This document shows positions 56,720 through 63,670 of a DNA stretch of 64,000 nucleotides, piece after piece. Source of the DNA: Thalia democratica (lineage: Eukaryota); the NCBI GenBank assembly GCA_965202585.1, contig OZ241830.1:8432001-8496000 (forward strand), in the 5' to 3' direction. The position numbers were made by a program, and so were the translations under genes. How positions within the stretch are numbered: position 1 is the first letter of the stretch; each line of letters begins with the position of its first letter. Below the pieces are notes generated by a model that saw only the letters and a program-made list of their open reading frames with translations, did no database searches and was not told the DNA's origin.

Positions 56720-59700
56720 TTATATCGACTTTACTTTAAGAATTTTAGTCGGGTACTTCTCATTCCCCGTAGTTTGCATCATCGCCCTTAAATACGCAAC
56801 AACACACTCAACTGCTTCAGTGGGCATGAAAACGCGTTCCTGGTGCGCGTACATCAGCTTCGATGCGTCATTCTCCTCATCAAACAAACTGAAGTCGCCT
56901 TCATCTTCAAAGTTCACGCAATACCTCTTGTGGTGGTAAAGGTACAAGGCAGGCTTGCTCGTCCATCGCTGCAAGACTTCGGGGTTCAGGAAGTGCTCGT
57001 GCCGCTCGAGATCGTGATTGAGGAAGTAGATCCACCACAGTCCGGAGTTGTTTGCTGTCGGTCCGTGCAGAGCGCTGTACAGATCATCTGAAGATTCCGG
57101 TCTCTTCTTCACTTTCGAGAGGTCGCTTGTGAGAAAAACGGGCTTTTTGTGTTCCAAAGGTTTCGTGTCTTTGTTGTCTGTAAAGTACTCTATGTAAGAT
57201 TTTGTAACTCGTATTGGAAAATCGTGGGTGGAAATAAAAAAAAACACAATTGTTGTACAAATAAAACTATTATTTAATGCTATTTAGTTTTTCAGTGTTT
57301 AAACAGTTTATTTTCGGTAAAATTCAATTAATTTAATACGCAACAAAAATTTATTTCAAACTAGATTTTTTTTTATAAAAATCAACAGATAAAAAGATAT
57401 CAAATTAATATAGCCAATTAAAAATCCCTGAAATACTCGCTATGAAACTTTAAAAGCGTATAATAAACTAACTTTTTTTTATATCATAGTGACTTTTAAG
57501 ATGAGTCAACTCTATTCTTGAATTTATTGGTTTTGTTTTGTCATACTCTAAACAAATTGACTTTCCCCACTCAATAGTTGCCAGAATGATCATGTGACCT
57601 GAATTTTCCTCGATCGCTGTTAACATCAGTTCGAATTCGTCATCTCTATCAAATTTAATTGCTTCATCTACATTCACACTCGCTGTTGGAAAGTCTTGAA
57701 GCTAAAAGAAAAACAATTTTTTACCAAATTTTCTACTTTACAGCTGTGTTTGTTATTGCGAATACACTCACTAGGACATGTGTGATGGAATATTTTGAAG
57801 TCGCTCCTTCTATAGTTACAAATGATTTGTCATCATACCATGGTTGTGTGTAGTTATCGCAGTCAATACAGTATTTCTTTCCTTTGTGTAGATTGATCAA
57901 GCTGCCATAAGATCTACAAAAAAATTGCTACAATTTCTATTTTAAACAATAAGAACTAAAAATTTACTTAATTTAGAATCATTAATAAAACGATTAGACT
58001 TTGTGAAAAGCAAAACAAAATATTTTCAATTTTTTTAATTTATACTATTTTAGAGGTTAACTTTTTTATTAATCGTTCTTAAAGATATCTGTATTTTTTT
58101 TAAAGTATAAAAATAAGTTTAAAAAAATGTATTAAAAATTCTGTATTTTGCACTGCAGTTTCATGTTTTATTTTTGCTTGAAAAGGTCGCAATCTCTTGC
58201 CACCGAAACCGGTCGCGAATAAAATATAAAATTTGCATAAATCTATTTATATAAGCTCTTTTTATCCCAGTAAATTGAGCATTCTTTTCTAGTTAAGGCA
58301 AATAACTATACAGTTATCAAATTATATAAATAAGTTATTCAAAATTGCTCAAAAAAAAAACTAAAGCACAAATTGCTTTAGGGTAGTTTATTCATTTAAA
58401 GCGGGAACGGGTTAAATATGCAGGAAGACATTTTAGCACGAGAGTTAAAAATTAATAAAATAAATTAAAAAGAAAAAATAAGAAATACAAAAACAAAACA
58501 AAATAAATAAAAAGGTTAATTAAAATAAAAAAAAGTTACCGACCGATGATAAAGGTTAGAGACAACAGTTAAGTAAAAAAAAAATAAATAAAACATAATA
58601 AAAATTATATTAAGCTCTAAAAATAAAAATAAACAAGAAAACTAAAACAAATATAAAAATAAAATATAGAAAAACAAAAGATTAAGACGAAAAATTTACC
58701 GACATCAGGTAAAAGTTAGGGGTAATGGTGATAGTAAAAGAAGTTAATAACTCACTTTAGGCAATAAAAAAAAAGTAATAATACAAACATTTTCTACCTA
58801 TGTAAAATTGTTCCTTCGTGCGAAACTTACTCCGTGTAAAAATGTCCCTTCGTGCAATTCAGACTACTACCTATTTGAAGCAGACCATGGCAATTTTTTC
58901 CTATTTATCTAGTTTAATATTTAATTGTGCTCTGCATTCCTATAAACTGATATTGTAGCCAGAAGCGCATGTTAGGTATATGATACAAAATTTTTTGAAT
59001 AAGATACAATAACATTCTAGCATATTAATAGTTTAAATTAGTTTAGCCCATAATTTAAAGTAACTTTATAGTAAACTATATTTAGTATATAAGCTTCACT
59101 TAAACTTAATTTGTATTCAGTGTTTGCAAAAATTAAAGTTTCAGCCATTTACTCACGGAATTAATTTTTTTGTAAGGAGTTAGAATATAACATAACGCTT
59201 ATAGAAATGACTAATTAGTAAAAAAGTTTCTCTTCTCTTTTCGATTATCAATAAAATAAATAAATTAACTTACATTTTATTTTGCCCTTCGCGAAAGACC
59301 AAGTCGGCTTTTTTCAGCGCTTGAATCCATCCTACCGTCCAAACTTCACCTTTACAAGTTGGCGGGAAAGCAACTGTTGCCTTGGCTGAAAACACAGAAG
59401 TAGAGTACCCAAAACAATGTTCAGTTTCTTGAACCATAACAAAATCGTCTTCAGCGCTGTGCCTTGCTGAGATGCACGCGTATATTTTTCCCTTTATGGG
59501 ACTTTTTTGACACTCGTCGATGCTTAGAGGTTTTTCCTTGCTAAGCCAGGGGCTACAAAATGCCCTGGTGAAAATTTCTGGTATGTCGGTAGATTCATGT
59601 ACGCGCGCTTTAGTAACTTCAATGAGCTTTTTAAGCTTTGGGTAAGAGATTTTAGTCGATGGAGTTAACTGTTCAAGGGAGTATTCATCCAAAAATTTTT

Positions 59701-59943
59701 TAAGAAAACTATCTACTTGTGAAGTTTTATATGACGGAAAAGCTTCTTTTACGTCACAAGCGTTAACAAATCGCTTAAAAGAATATCGGGGCACTCTGTA
59801 CTTTACCTTTCGACTAAGCTTCGGGTTTAGATAAATTATTCCGTTCAAAAAATCATTTTCCTTTGAGATTTTTTCATTTTTATTTTGTGATGAATTTTGT
59901 TTAAGCTTGTTCTCATCATCCGGTCTGTTGCACTCAACCAGCA
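56720..59943 (-). CDS. FAM78: FAM78-family domain exons with a C-terminal extension
   Basis: Exons 59943-59274, 57913-57772, 57701-57473 and ~57177-56720 (last acceptor ambiguous, but all candidates are phase 1). Motifs FSAKATVAFPP...EVWTVGWIQA, DCD...PWY, FDRDDEFELMLTA...IILATIEW and ALHGPTANNS match FAM78A/B (FKASARVVMPP...ETWVVGWIQA, DSD...PWY, IKRDQSFTTWLVA...IILQTIKW, ALVKPNANDA). Confidence 0.82.
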
Positions 59944-60015
59944 CTGAATTAAAAAAAAAGTTAATTAAGGCAATAACAAAGCGCAAAAGCGTTTAAAAAC
60001 ACCTAATTTACTTAC

Positions 60016-60976
60016 AATTTAAAATGTACAAAACATAACCATAACCTTGTTTAGGAAGTATGTTTCTGTATTCTAAAAACGGTGAACGATCATAAATTTT
60101 ACTTTTATTGATTTTCTCACTGTGATATCTGGCCCAATCAGTTGCAATCATTAACATCAGCTTGCCTAAAAAATGTTTTGAACATTAAGAAGTGTTTTGT
60201 TTTTAAAAACTGATGCATTACAAGTTGCTTCTTTTTTTATAACAAGTTTTAGCTATAAGTAAATGAATAGCTAAACATTAAAAAACTAAAAGAAAAGCAA
60301 CTCACTTAAATCATGTTGATCTTCATCAAATTTATGTACGGACTTTATTACATCCTTAACACTTGGTCGCAATTGAGGATCGACACAAAGCATTTGCTTC
60401 AAAACTTGCGTGTAGTAATTTTCAGAGCTCGAAGGAAATAATCCCTCATTTGCCCACATACAATATCTTTTATCAGTATTCGCAGCTATTTTCCAAGGAA
60501 AACATAAATTGTTTATATAAAAAATAATTATCCCAGCAGCCCAAGTATCACCTGCTTTGCTTCTAATATTACTACCTACTAACTCAGGTGCCTTGAAATC
60601 AGTATGGTCATGCAATTTCCTCATTAAACATGGTTTATCTGACACGTTGATTAGAACTAAATTGTTGTTTCTGTCAACCATCAAATTATCGAAACAAATA
60701 CTGTATTTGACATTTTCAAAACTGTTGTGTATAATGTTCAACTTGTATAACAATTGTTTGCACCATCTGTCTTTCAGTTTTTGGCTTGAAACTGTCAAAG
60801 AATCCAATAAAGTAACTTGGTTAATGCTCATTGTAAAATTAAAAACAAAGGTTTTGCTTGATACAACAGATGCTTTGATTTTCTGACGGCTTTGCTTGTT
60901 TGGATCTCTAGAATTTGACAACTTAATTAGCTGTATATGATTTAAGCAATTAGAAGTGTTTGGTAATAATAGCAAA
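60016..60976 (-). CDS. Pseudokinase exon (60976-60306) plus linker exon (60165-60016), in frame with the FAM78 exons
   Basis: Kinase C-lobe motifs FKAPE, GDTWAAG, FPW and DPQLRPS are present, but there is no HRD or DFG. Donor A|GTGAGT at 60305, acceptor ttttAG at 60166, donor T|GTAAGT at 60015, acceptor ttcAG at 59944; all phase 1. The 5' end of the gene was not found. Confidence 0.7.
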
Positions 60977-62436
60977 CTGTATACAAGTTAATACAAAATG
61001 AACTAAAGCTGATGTGTAAAAACAACATAAGTATGACTATTGTTCATTTCAATTAAGTTTGAATTTATAAATTAATTTCTAGCTTTGTTACAAATTCTTT
61101 AATAAAACAAAAATTATTTTTAAATTAAATGATGAAAAGATAGATAAAAAGATAGAAAAAGTAGATGAAAAATTCTAACTATATACTTAAAAAAAAGTCA
61201 AAACATACATTCAAAAAAGAGTATAAACAAAAAGTAACTTTTTTGCTCCAAAACTACTTTAAAAATTTTCTTAGAATAATAGAAATGAAATACTTTTTTG
61301 TTTTGGCTACTAACTTAGTCGAAAAATAAGTTCCAATTAAAATATTAAATAATAAAATGTAATATTTATAACTTAAGTTTTCTTAAAAACTTAATCTTTT
61401 TATGTAAATAAGCAACTCTACTCATATGGTAATTTCTTTTCAAAATATAATTATTATGTAGTCGTTTAACTTTTTTTTTGATTAACTTAAAAGGTTTTTA
61501 CTTTGTATCTAAAATATTGTTACATAAAATTTTATAAGTCTTTATATTAGTTTAGGATTAATAAGGTTTTTATAACAACTATAACAAATTATAAACGTTT
61601 ATATTTAACGATGAATTGGAAAACAAACTTAATCTTTTTCTATTGTAGACTTGTTTGTTAAGTATTAATAAAAAACTACCCTAGCTTTTGTAAAAACTTT
61701 ATTAAAGTCATTAAATCTTTGTACTATAGTTGTTCGATTTTTTTAATCCAGTAAATACTCATAAATTGTTATGTTAATACTTGTTCTTAAGTCAGTAAGT
61801 TTTACACAACAAATAAAATTATCATGTAAAAGATTAAATGAAACTTAAGTATTATTAATTAATGATACATGAAACACGGATTAGTTTTTTTTAGCATAAA
61901 TTAATTTTGAGTTTTAAAAAGATTTCACTTAAATGAGTTTGTAAGTATTTTAAATTCAAGTAAACAAATTTTAAAATTTAAAAACACTTTGTTAAATAAT
62001 AAATTAAATACAATTCTCTGGCTTTTTTTTTGTGTTTTATAATTTATAACAAGCTAGTTTTAGTATATTAGTATAGTACTACTAGATGCAACTCAAATGT
62101 AGTAGTAAAAGTGTTTCATTAAAAAATTCTCTACTAAGAATATAATGTTTTTTGATAATGATGTTATACAAACTTTGAGAAGTTGTTTTTATATTTTCAA
62201 AATACGCTTTCTTTCCCAAAATACGGCTAATGAATACTTAATATGCAAAGAAAAAGTCTTTTTTATACTTGATGTAACTTACTTTATAATACGTCATAAA
62301 TAGCATATTTAGTTGAAACTTAAAACATTTTAAAATAATAATCATGAATATTTGTTAAAATGATTTGAAAAATTTTCATATTAGGATACGTTGCAGCATT
62401 TAGTGTAGTATTCGCCAAGTATTCGATGTAATTTTG

Positions 62437-63670
62437 TTTCGGAGAATTCTCATATAAAGAGTCAAATTTGGTCTAAAAAAATGGTATGGACGTCTTCCCT
62501 AAGGTCTGTAGTTTTGCAATTCAGTCTTTGATTTTTTATTTTTGACGTATTTTATTCAAAAATGACGTCACAAAAAAAAAGTCATTTTTCGTCATAAAAA
62601 ATAGTTTCGGAGAATTCTCATATAAAGAGTCAAAGTTGGTCTTAAAAAATGGTATGGGCGTCTTTCTTAAGGTCTTCAATTTTGCAATTCAGTCTTTGAT
62701 TTTTAGTTTTTGACGTATTTTTTTCAAAAATGACGTCACAAAAAAAAAGTCATTTTTCGTCATAAAAAAAAAGTTTCGGAGAATTTTCGTATAAAGAGTC
62801 AAAGTTGGTCTTTAAAAATGGTATGGGCGTCTTCCCTAAGGTCTGTAGTTTTGCAATTCAGTCTTTGATTTTTAATTTTTGACGTATTTTTTTCAAAAAT
62901 GACGTCACAAAAAAAGTCATTTTTCGTCATAAAATAATAGTTTCGGAGAATTCTCGTATAAAGAGTCAAAGTTGGTCTTTAAAAGAGGTATTGGCGTCTT
63001 CCTTGGGGTCTGTAGTTTTGCAATTCAGTCTTTGATTTTTTATTTTTGACGTATTTTTTTTCAAAAATGACGTCACAAAAAAAAGTCATTTTTCGTCATA
63101 AAAAAATAGTTTCGGAGAATTCTCATATAAAGAGTCAAAGTTGGTCTAAAAAAATGGTATGGGCGTCTTTCCTAAGGTCTGTAGTTTTGCAATTCAGTCT
63201 TTGATTTTTACATTTTGACGTATTTTTTTTAAATGACGTCACAAAAAAAAGTCATTTTTCGTCATAAAAAAATAGTTTCGGAGAATTCTCGTATAAAGAG
63301 TCAAAGTTGGTCTTTAAAAGAGGTATTGGTGTCTTCCTTAAGGTCTGTAGTTTTGCAATTCAGTCTTTGATTTTTTTTTTGACGTATTTTATTCACAAAT
63401 GACGTCACAAAAAAAAAGTCATTTTTCGTCATAAAAAATAGTTTCGGAGAATTTTCGTATAAAGAGTCAAAGTTGGTCTTAAAAAATGGTATGGGCGTCT
63501 TTCTTAAGGTCTGCAATTTTGCAATTCAGTCTTTAATTTTTAATTTTTGACGTATTTTTTTCAAAAATGACGTCACAAAAAAAAGTCATTTTTCGTCATA
63601 AAAAAATAGTTTTAGAGAATTCTCGTATAAAGAGTCAAAGCGGGTCTTTAAAAGTGGTATTGGCGTCTTC
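62437..63670. repeat. Tandem array of ~168-bp units (7 full + partial)
   Basis: The unit start ttt(c/t)(g/a)gagaatt recurs at 62437, 62605, 62774, 62941, 63110, 63276, 63442 and 63610. Each full unit carries TGACGTCA; length variation is in homopolymer runs. Confidence 0.95.

Follow-up and report, generated by a model that had tools for sequence, protein, structure and literature searches.

The window analysed here, a stretch of 64,000 nucleotides (nt) from Thalia democratica (contig OZ241830.1, positions 8,432,001 to 8,496,000), carries on its minus strand a six-exon gene. This gene most probably encodes a single 734-amino-acid (aa) protein of a large tunicate family, in which the C-terminal lobe (C-lobe) of a protein kinase is joined to a divergent FAM78 domain.

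Gene model and exon structure

The six exons are bounded by GT-AG introns and form one uninterrupted 734-codon frame, from the ATG at 60831-60829 to the TAA at 56722-56720 (Table 1; positions are those of the window unless a contig is named). All of the junctions named in the original prediction (the donor at 60306, the stop-free exon at 60165-60016 and the exon starting from 59943) are present in the sequence and phase-compatible. The predicted length of more than 750 aa was too generous for the supported product of 734 aa, the excess being a non-conserved stretch without an ATG upstream of the conserved start Met.

Table 1. Features of the kinase-like/FAM78-like gene in the window.
Feature	Position	Strand	Description
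Exon 1 (coding sequence)	60306..60831	-	aa 1-175; degenerate kinase C-lobe, alpha-E to alpha-I equivalents, without N-lobe
Exon 1, 3' end	60306/60305	-	A/GTGAGT donor, phase 1, 20 nt before an in-frame TAG
Intron 1	60166..60305	-	140 nt, GTGAGT...TTTTTTAG
Exon 2 (mini-exon)	60016..60165	-	150 nt, stop-free, phase 1 to 1; aa 176-225
Exon 3	59274..59943	-	aa 226-448; pyrimidine-rich CAG acceptor; donor AAT/GTAAGT
Exon 4	57772..57913	-	aa 449-496, FAM78-like; CDNYTQPWYDD corresponds to FAM78 SDSDGVNYPWYGN
Exon 5	57473..57701	-	aa 497-572, FAM78-like (IILATIEWGKSICLEYD)
Exon 6	56720..57207	-	aa 573-734 and TAA stop; end of FAM78-like domain, then a tail of ~100 aa
AATAAA	56670..56675	-	candidate polyadenylation signal, 45 nt past the stop codon; read from the sequence

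Read without splicing, the open reading frame (ORF) of exon 1 terminates at a TAG within intron 1 (60286-60288), an intron whose sequence, read directly in the window copy, contains no AATAAA. The mini-exon encodes the peptide S-K-L-M-L-M-I-A-T-D-W...L-P-K-Q-G between the acceptor ttttttag/ and the donor /GTAAGT. It also holds a second in-phase donor, CAAG/GTTATG (exon end 60045), which is homologous to the AAG/GTTTGT of the paralogs. Paralog mini-exons stop directly after Q-G, and the stronger GTAAGT of the window copy lies 29 nt further on, also in phase.

In an alignment of 32 sequences, the first ~150 aa of exon 3 form a family-specific linker (FL.GII.LNP...R.P.Y..RF.N; CSPWLSKEKP.S), and the end of this exon is the start of the FAM78-like domain (KATVAFPP.CKGEVWTVGWIQA). 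Exon 6 carries the motif GPTANNSGLWW, comparable to PNANDAQVLMW of FAM78, and its C-terminal ~100 residues are kept among the paralogs. Its acceptor, CGAG/TT, is phase-compatible and coincides with the start of paralog homology. The GC content of exon 6 is ~50%, compared with 27-44% in the other exons and ~20% in flanking DNA. Exons 2-6 give no Pfam match; the exon 3 linker matches nothing in Pfam or in the PDB, the latter queried with an exon-3 alignment that includes the linker. Exon 3 has no usable match in the ESM Atlas, and exon 6 with its tail has no match in Pfam, PDB or ESM Atlas.

The kinase-like module

Exon 1 matches the Pfam Pkinase model (PF00069) with an E-value of 2.5e-10 and a score of 40.7 bits, against a gathering cut-off of 31.7, and a Pfam scan at E up to 1 returns Pkinase and PK_Tyr_Ser-Thr only. 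The Pkinase match covers profile positions 88-260 of 263, which correspond to the C-lobe, and the start Met of the window copy falls just before the alpha-E equivalent. With the match opening at profile position 88, none of the features of the N-terminal lobe (N-lobe) is found, neither the glycine-rich loop nor the VAIK lysine nor the alpha-C glutamate. The gene had been described as encoding a pseudokinase; the kinase homology in that description holds, and the implied whole kinase domain does not, since the module is a C-lobe that begins at the start codon.

An alignment of 24 paralogs bears out the predicted loss of HRD and DFG and the retention of APE, D-x-W-A-A-G and the subdomain XI arginine. 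Residues P82, E83, L84, W97, A98, G100 and R155 are invariant across the 24 sequences, with A81 and D95 nearly so, and the kept C-lobe core comprises A-P-E, D-x-W-A-x-G (subdomain IX), P-W, M-L-C-V-D-P..R and the subdomain XI arginine. About 20 columns of the kinase-exon alignment are invariant, residues of the C-lobe structural core among them. The catalytic loop has the family consensus x-C-N-I-C-L-D-N-L-K-V-D, in which the HRD aspartate is not conserved and the asparagine alone is nearly invariant. In a manual alignment to HRDLKPEN, a near-invariant cysteine occupies the position of the catalytic-loop lysine. The DFG position reads N-V-S or N-V-F. Because the ATP-binding N-lobe, the HRD aspartate and lysine and the DFG aspartate are all lacking, the product is predicted to be unable to phosphorylate.

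A profile of the 24 paralogs retrieves 281 PDB kinase sequences at E<=1e-3, with Chk1 the best (4.6e-10), followed by MELK, SNRK, PLK1 and SIK3 (2e-8 to 3e-7). All five kinases can be aligned to the family from the catalytic-loop region to subdomain XI, and the family motif F-P-W-K.A..S-D..F..W resembles L-P-W-D.P.D...Y..W of Chk1. Compared with Chk1 and CAMK-like kinases, the family lacks the N-lobe and shows HRD replaced by x-C/Y-N/S, the catalytic-loop lysine by cysteine and DFG by N-V-S/F. The N-terminal module can tentatively be assigned to the C-lobe of a Chk1/CAMK-like protein kinase, the donor family being tentative because Chk1 leads the other kinases by only ~5 bits.

The FAM78-like domain

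The predicted FAM78 homology is confirmed by two profile comparisons. A hidden Markov model (HMM) built from 60 vertebrate FAM78A/B sequences matches the spliced model with 73.9 bits (E 5.6e-19 for a nominal 1e6 sequences). HMM positions 52-234 of 281 align to aa 395-565 of the model. The alignment crosses the junctions between exons 3 and 4 and between exons 4 and 5 and thereby supports both of them. With hhalign, the last 57 aa of the exon 3 family match FAM78 at 98% probability (E 2.2e-13). The FAM78 protein of Ciona savignyi (P0082) matches the window model with E 6.6e-18 and in turn retrieves vertebrate FAM78A/B at E about 1e-97. Its structural model, with a predicted local distance difference test score (pLDDT) of 89.6, superposes on human and mouse FAM78A/B with a template modelling score (TM) of 0.93.

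The domain spans roughly aa 385-635 of the 734-aa protein and shares with FAM78A/B a homologous beta-sandwich domain over ~170-250 residues, including the motifs ATV.FPP...E.WTVGWIQA, PWY and I.W. W-T-V-G-W-I-Q, P-W-Y, the arginine of R.Q, W192 and R209 of FAM78 are kept. C75 and SSWE are lost or deleted, as is all of NDNFYPSVTW, and several residues that do not vary in FAM78 are replaced. Identity to FAM78 is ~27-35%, and exon 5 lacks nine residues at the nearly invariant NDNFYPSVTW. FAM78 proteins are single domains of ~260-290 aa with an M-G-C start; the window domain, in contrast, is internal and without that start, with ~385 aa (kinase C-lobe and linker) ahead of it and a tail of ~100 aa behind. 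Its copy number here is 50 or more, compared with one or two for FAM78. By these comparisons, the FAM78-like domain of the fusion is a divergent FAM78 subfamily.

The genome also contains a canonical FAM78 orthologue on contig C10 (34551897-34556474, minus strand), whose six exon matches are 60-78% identical to Ciona savignyi FAM78. These matches break near P0082 residues 90, ~140 and ~228, and the junctions of the window model at 448/449, 496/497 and 572/573 map, in approximate agreement from a BLAST alignment, to P0082 ~88, ~138 and ~223-232. As the canonical gene is separate and its exon breaks are roughly shared, the family is best seen as a FAM78 offshoot that gained upstream exons.

Fold searches with the FAM78 model of pLDDT 89.6, an elaborated beta-sandwich, return only generic beta-sandwiches (Foldseek E>=1e-3). 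The best VIA-align hit, Asf1 with Z 7.5, lies within the stated noise, and the fold offers no functional clue.

In Ciona intestinalis, the LOC494362 isoforms P0071 and P0086 (968-1010 aa) have their FAM78 domain at ~650-900. Ahead of the domain is an internal M-G-C-F-H-S motif that resembles the N-terminus usual in FAM78, and UniRef also holds versions of 262-294 aa. The long forms could result from the merging of gene models or could be genuine isoforms with an extended N-terminus.

Gene family in the genome

The 801-Mb assembly that contains the window has 69 matches to exon 1 and at least 64 to exon 3. About 50 of them pair up on one strand, the kinase-like exon lying 0.3-2.5 kb (mostly <1.3 kb) upstream of the FAM78-like exon. 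These pairs are spread over at least eight large contigs, among them C1, C4, C5, C6, C7, C8 and C9, and also over small ones. Many are in tandem clusters, and their identity ranges from 95% down to 26-35%. Where the retrieved paralog DNA extends far enough, it contains exons 4, 5 and 6 in this order, and exon 6 has 37 genomic matches downstream of paralog exons. This is a lineage-specific family of at least 50 copies, amplified partly in tandem, and not a one-off Rosetta-stone fusion.

At least 28 copies, with divergence down to ~45% identity, keep the frame of the kinase exon open. Ratios of nonsynonymous to synonymous substitution rates (dN/dS), obtained for nine paralog pairs and both exon types, are 0.09-0.58 in 17 of 18 exon comparisons, with an outlier of 0.81, and most pairs lie at about 0.3-0.5. 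Both exon types are under purifying selection.

Further copies lie near the window on contig C6. An intact paralog (8537545-8545598, plus strand) is located 41 kb after the window end. On the other side are a kinase-exon-only fragment with a stop (8423026-8423704, plus strand), 8.3 kb before the window start, and a pseudogenised full copy with several stops (8386307-8387899, minus strand), 44 kb before the window.

Four marine metagenome contigs, from Tara and other sources, show the ORF order Pkinase, FAM78-like exon and two more ORFs. Near-identical copies of a C8 paralog are present in four independent ocean metagenome assemblies (L061-L064; ENA, including Tara PRJEB4352), indicating that the animal's DNA is common in those samples.

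Splicing and the start of the protein

Splice signals were compared among paralogs at the nucleotide level over 34 merged loci, a set that leaves out the most diverged clusters (C1 73.9-74.1 Mb, C4 37.0 Mb, C5 and C8). At the homologous end of the kinase exon, GT[AG]AGT is found in phase 1 in 24 of 28 intact copies, where 0.77 would be expected from the loci's own frequency of this hexamer; three further intact copies have GTTAGT at this position. Sequence past the donor is not conserved and runs into a stop 0-70 codons later. The mini-exon motif [KN]-[LIV]-x-x-M-I-A-T-D-[YWF]-I-K..., ending in ...P-x-Q-G, is present at 27 of 33 paralog loci, with a phase-1 AG acceptor that precedes the K/N codon by two bases. 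Third-position differences among the loci (AAG/AAA; CTG/CTA/CTT/CTC/TTG) leave the K and L residues unchanged, and this synonymous variation upstream of the motif Met indicates that the stretch is coding rather than 5' untranslated region. Homologues of intron 1 measure 52-237 nt in the 18 paralogs with both ends defined (several at 52-56 nt), and only five of these 18 contain AATAAA. Automatic choice of mini-exon donor and exon-3 acceptor gave clean joins in 21 of 33 cases, a figure with many degrees of freedom that is not used as evidence.

Linkage, splice-site positions and phases are thus kept across dozens of diverged paralogs, in line with the earlier proposal that the kinase-like and FAM78-like parts are one gene. 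On the strength of this paralog comparison, it is very probable that the exons are cis-spliced into one mRNA.

At the other end of exon 1, about 28 of 29 intact copies, as judged by eye, have an in-frame Met located 5-40 codons ahead of the conserved block, and the N-terminal sequence M-S-S-K-Y-K is common to several subfamilies. The window frame remains open for 48 codons upstream of the ATG; this stretch is not conserved and contains a stop in a 95%-identical copy, and in other subfamilies a stop comes 2-40 codons ahead of the Met. The paralogs show no conserved AG acceptor in front of their conserved kinase block, and tblastx of the 1.4-kb upstream flanks of distant paralogs found nothing beyond ~100 nt of the same exon. 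In the window, no plausible exon was seen between 60976 and a satellite at 62436, and no conserved coding sequence was found in the 3 kb upstream. The gene is preceded by 1.5 kb of DNA with 17-21% GC, and the satellite lies further upstream. Taken together, these comparisons suggest that the N-lobe is most likely absent altogether.

The satellite (62436-63670) is a 168-bp tandem repeat of 7.4 copies at 90% identity, located 1.6 kb upstream of the start codon. It is the source of repeated short ORFs on both strands.

Interpretation and alternative readings

The protein would have three parts: an N-terminal, non-catalytic, Chk1/CAMK-like kinase C-lobe; a family-specific linker of ~200 aa, made of the mini-exon and the first two thirds of exon 3; and a divergent FAM78-type beta-sandwich followed by a tail of ~100 aa. 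Its origin may lie in a duplicate of a FAM78 gene, with roughly the same three intron positions, that gained upstream exons including the kinase C-lobe. No signal peptide is visible by eye in the 734-aa product. Our best guess, by analogy with KIND-domain proteins, is that the product acts in the cytosol as an adaptor without catalytic activity, that it has two binding modules and that the family diversifies through tandem duplication.

Several points weigh against this account. The fold model of the kinase-like exon has a pLDDT of 47.9, with an order of helices and strands that fits a C-lobe loosely, so that the C-lobe fold assignment rests on sequence homology only. In three public runs that contain this DNA, no joint occurs at any predicted junction; contigs from these runs are colinear with the introns (e.g. 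60033-60314 and 58601-59194), which marks the runs as DNA and makes them uninformative on splicing. The mini-exon is symmetric (phase 1 to 1), and skipping it would keep the frame. The Met of x-M-I-A-T-D-Y/W is found in nearly all paralogs, and tunicates have spliced-leader (SL) trans-splicing and operons; together, these suggest that a FAM78-only product may exist as an additional or alternative one. The upstream comparison reaches 1.4 kb among paralogs and more than 3 kb in the window, and N-lobe exons could lie beyond. Finally, the adaptor function is one that we purely infer, and fold searches gave no informative solved relative of the FAM78 fold.

The alternative that survives best, although we regard it as unlikely, is a pair of adjacent genes, possibly an operon. 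A small kinase-C-lobe protein would end at the intron-1 TAG, and a FAM78-like mRNA would start, or be SL trans-spliced, at the exon-2 acceptor and be translated from the Met of M-I-A-T-D-W. Besides the conserved Met, this arrangement agrees with the fact that every kinase ORF reaches a stop soon past the donor, and the three DNA runs found do not contradict it. However, it offers no explanation of the phase-1 GT[AG]AGT that 24 of 28 copies share at one codon position, of the constant phase match of this donor to the mini-exon acceptor or of the K and L residues that are kept, with synonymous variation, upstream of the Met. The sequence between donor and stop is unconserved and of variable length, AATAAA is present in only five of 18 introns, and several introns are only 52-56 nt long. 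Separate genes or an operon do not account for the donor, the unconserved sequence behind it, the acceptor and the codon constraint before the Met.

Somewhat less probable still is a complete kinase or pseudokinase fused to FAM78, with its N-lobe on distant upstream exons. Apart from the limited reach of the upstream comparison, the 48 open codons ahead of the window ATG would suit such a protein. But that stretch is unconserved and interrupted in the 95%-identical copy and in other subfamilies, a conserved AG acceptor is not seen, several subfamilies begin with the same M-S-S-K-Y-K, and upstream lie 1.5 kb of DNA with 17-21% GC and then the satellite. Least credible is a view of the kinase-like exon as a dead fragment (a pseudogene piece or captured exon) that lies upstream of a FAM78-like gene and matches its frame by chance: the truncated domain, its lost catalytic motifs and the broken copies near the window (the full copy at C6:8386307-8387899 and the kinase-only fragment at C6:8423026-8423704) would suit such a fragment, but the paralog comparison already contradicts it, with open frames in at least 28 copies, ~20 invariant columns, dN/dS of ~0.3-0.5 in most pairs and a conserved start Met and donor.

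Relation to KIND domains

As a kinase C-lobe that lacks both N-lobe and catalytic residues, the window module resembles the KIND domain. Pfam includes a KIND model, and the Pfam scan of exon 1 at E<=1 gave no match to a KIND profile. KIND is a stand-alone kinase C-lobe that serves as a protein-binding module in Spir, PTPN13, FRMPD2 and very-KIND (PMC3415841). In PTPN13, the KIND domain is located at the N-terminus (PMC6615252), as is the window module. The window module differs from KIND in being nearest to Chk1/CAMK-like kinases and in its partner domains. The KIND domain of Spir binds a formin peptide and has no G helix (PMC3415841), whereas the window module keeps the G-helix-region motif F-P-W-K.A..SD..F..W. 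The lack of KIND membership by sequence, together with the Chk1-like G-helix region, points to a seemingly independent loss of the N-lobe.

A further reading, which we hold with some doubt, is that the family represents a second, independent stand-alone kinase C-lobe module, KIND-like and derived from a Chk1/CAMK-like kinase, which was joined to FAM78 and expanded, in pelagic tunicates, into a set of more than 50 diverging genes for cytosolic adaptors or receptors. The family would then be a second case, after KIND, of a kinase C-lobe that survives and is reused without its N-lobe, with a bearing on the origin of pseudokinase scaffolds.

Other organisms and wider meaning

An exon-3 profile searched against 1.84 billion representative proteins gives 60 matches. 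All of the strong ones are exon-sized marine metagenome fragments, with no full-length annotated protein among them. Its weak tail includes LOC494362 of Ciona intestinalis; the longer weak matches (481-994 aa, LOC494362 among them) contain no Pfam domain and do not resemble the kinase-like module. A word-index search with P0070 returned only itself. The proposed search for the same architecture in other organisms thus found none among proteins, at a distance where sensitivity is low. In the literature searched, FAM78 appears only in gene lists and in association or expression studies. The domain combination, the derivation from a Chk1/CAMK-like C-lobe alone and the size of the family were found in no annotated protein or paper searched, a search of limited reach at such divergence. 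While the domain types are known, we did not find their combination in the proteins and literature covered.

FAM78 is conserved across chordates. If the reading as a second stand-alone C-lobe module is correct, the family would give FAM78 its first functional context and may represent a lineage-specific recognition or signalling system. A fusion under selection in dozens of copies suggests the hypothesis that FAM78 is a binding domain placed beside a docking module. The broader claim in the original prediction, a link between FAM78 as a whole and kinase-scaffold signalling, is rather weak: the copies, 50 or more, belong to a single lineage, an ordinary FAM78 gene exists separately, and no second organism with the fusion was found among the proteins searched. 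For annotation, ~50 loci are affected; ORF-based callers divide these into 'Pkinase' and unnamed ORFs, as on the metagenome contigs, and they should be merged as single six-exon genes.

A probable repeat within intron 3

Within intron 3, at window positions 58076-58469, read-word depth in the three DNA runs rises from a few hundred to 40,000-340,000. Inverted repeats in this region are weak only. Many loose ends fall at 58154-58171 and 58249-58310, and joints to the opposite strand occur at 58155/58242. The segment looks like a very high-copy short inserted repeat, possibly of the miniature inverted-repeat transposable element type.

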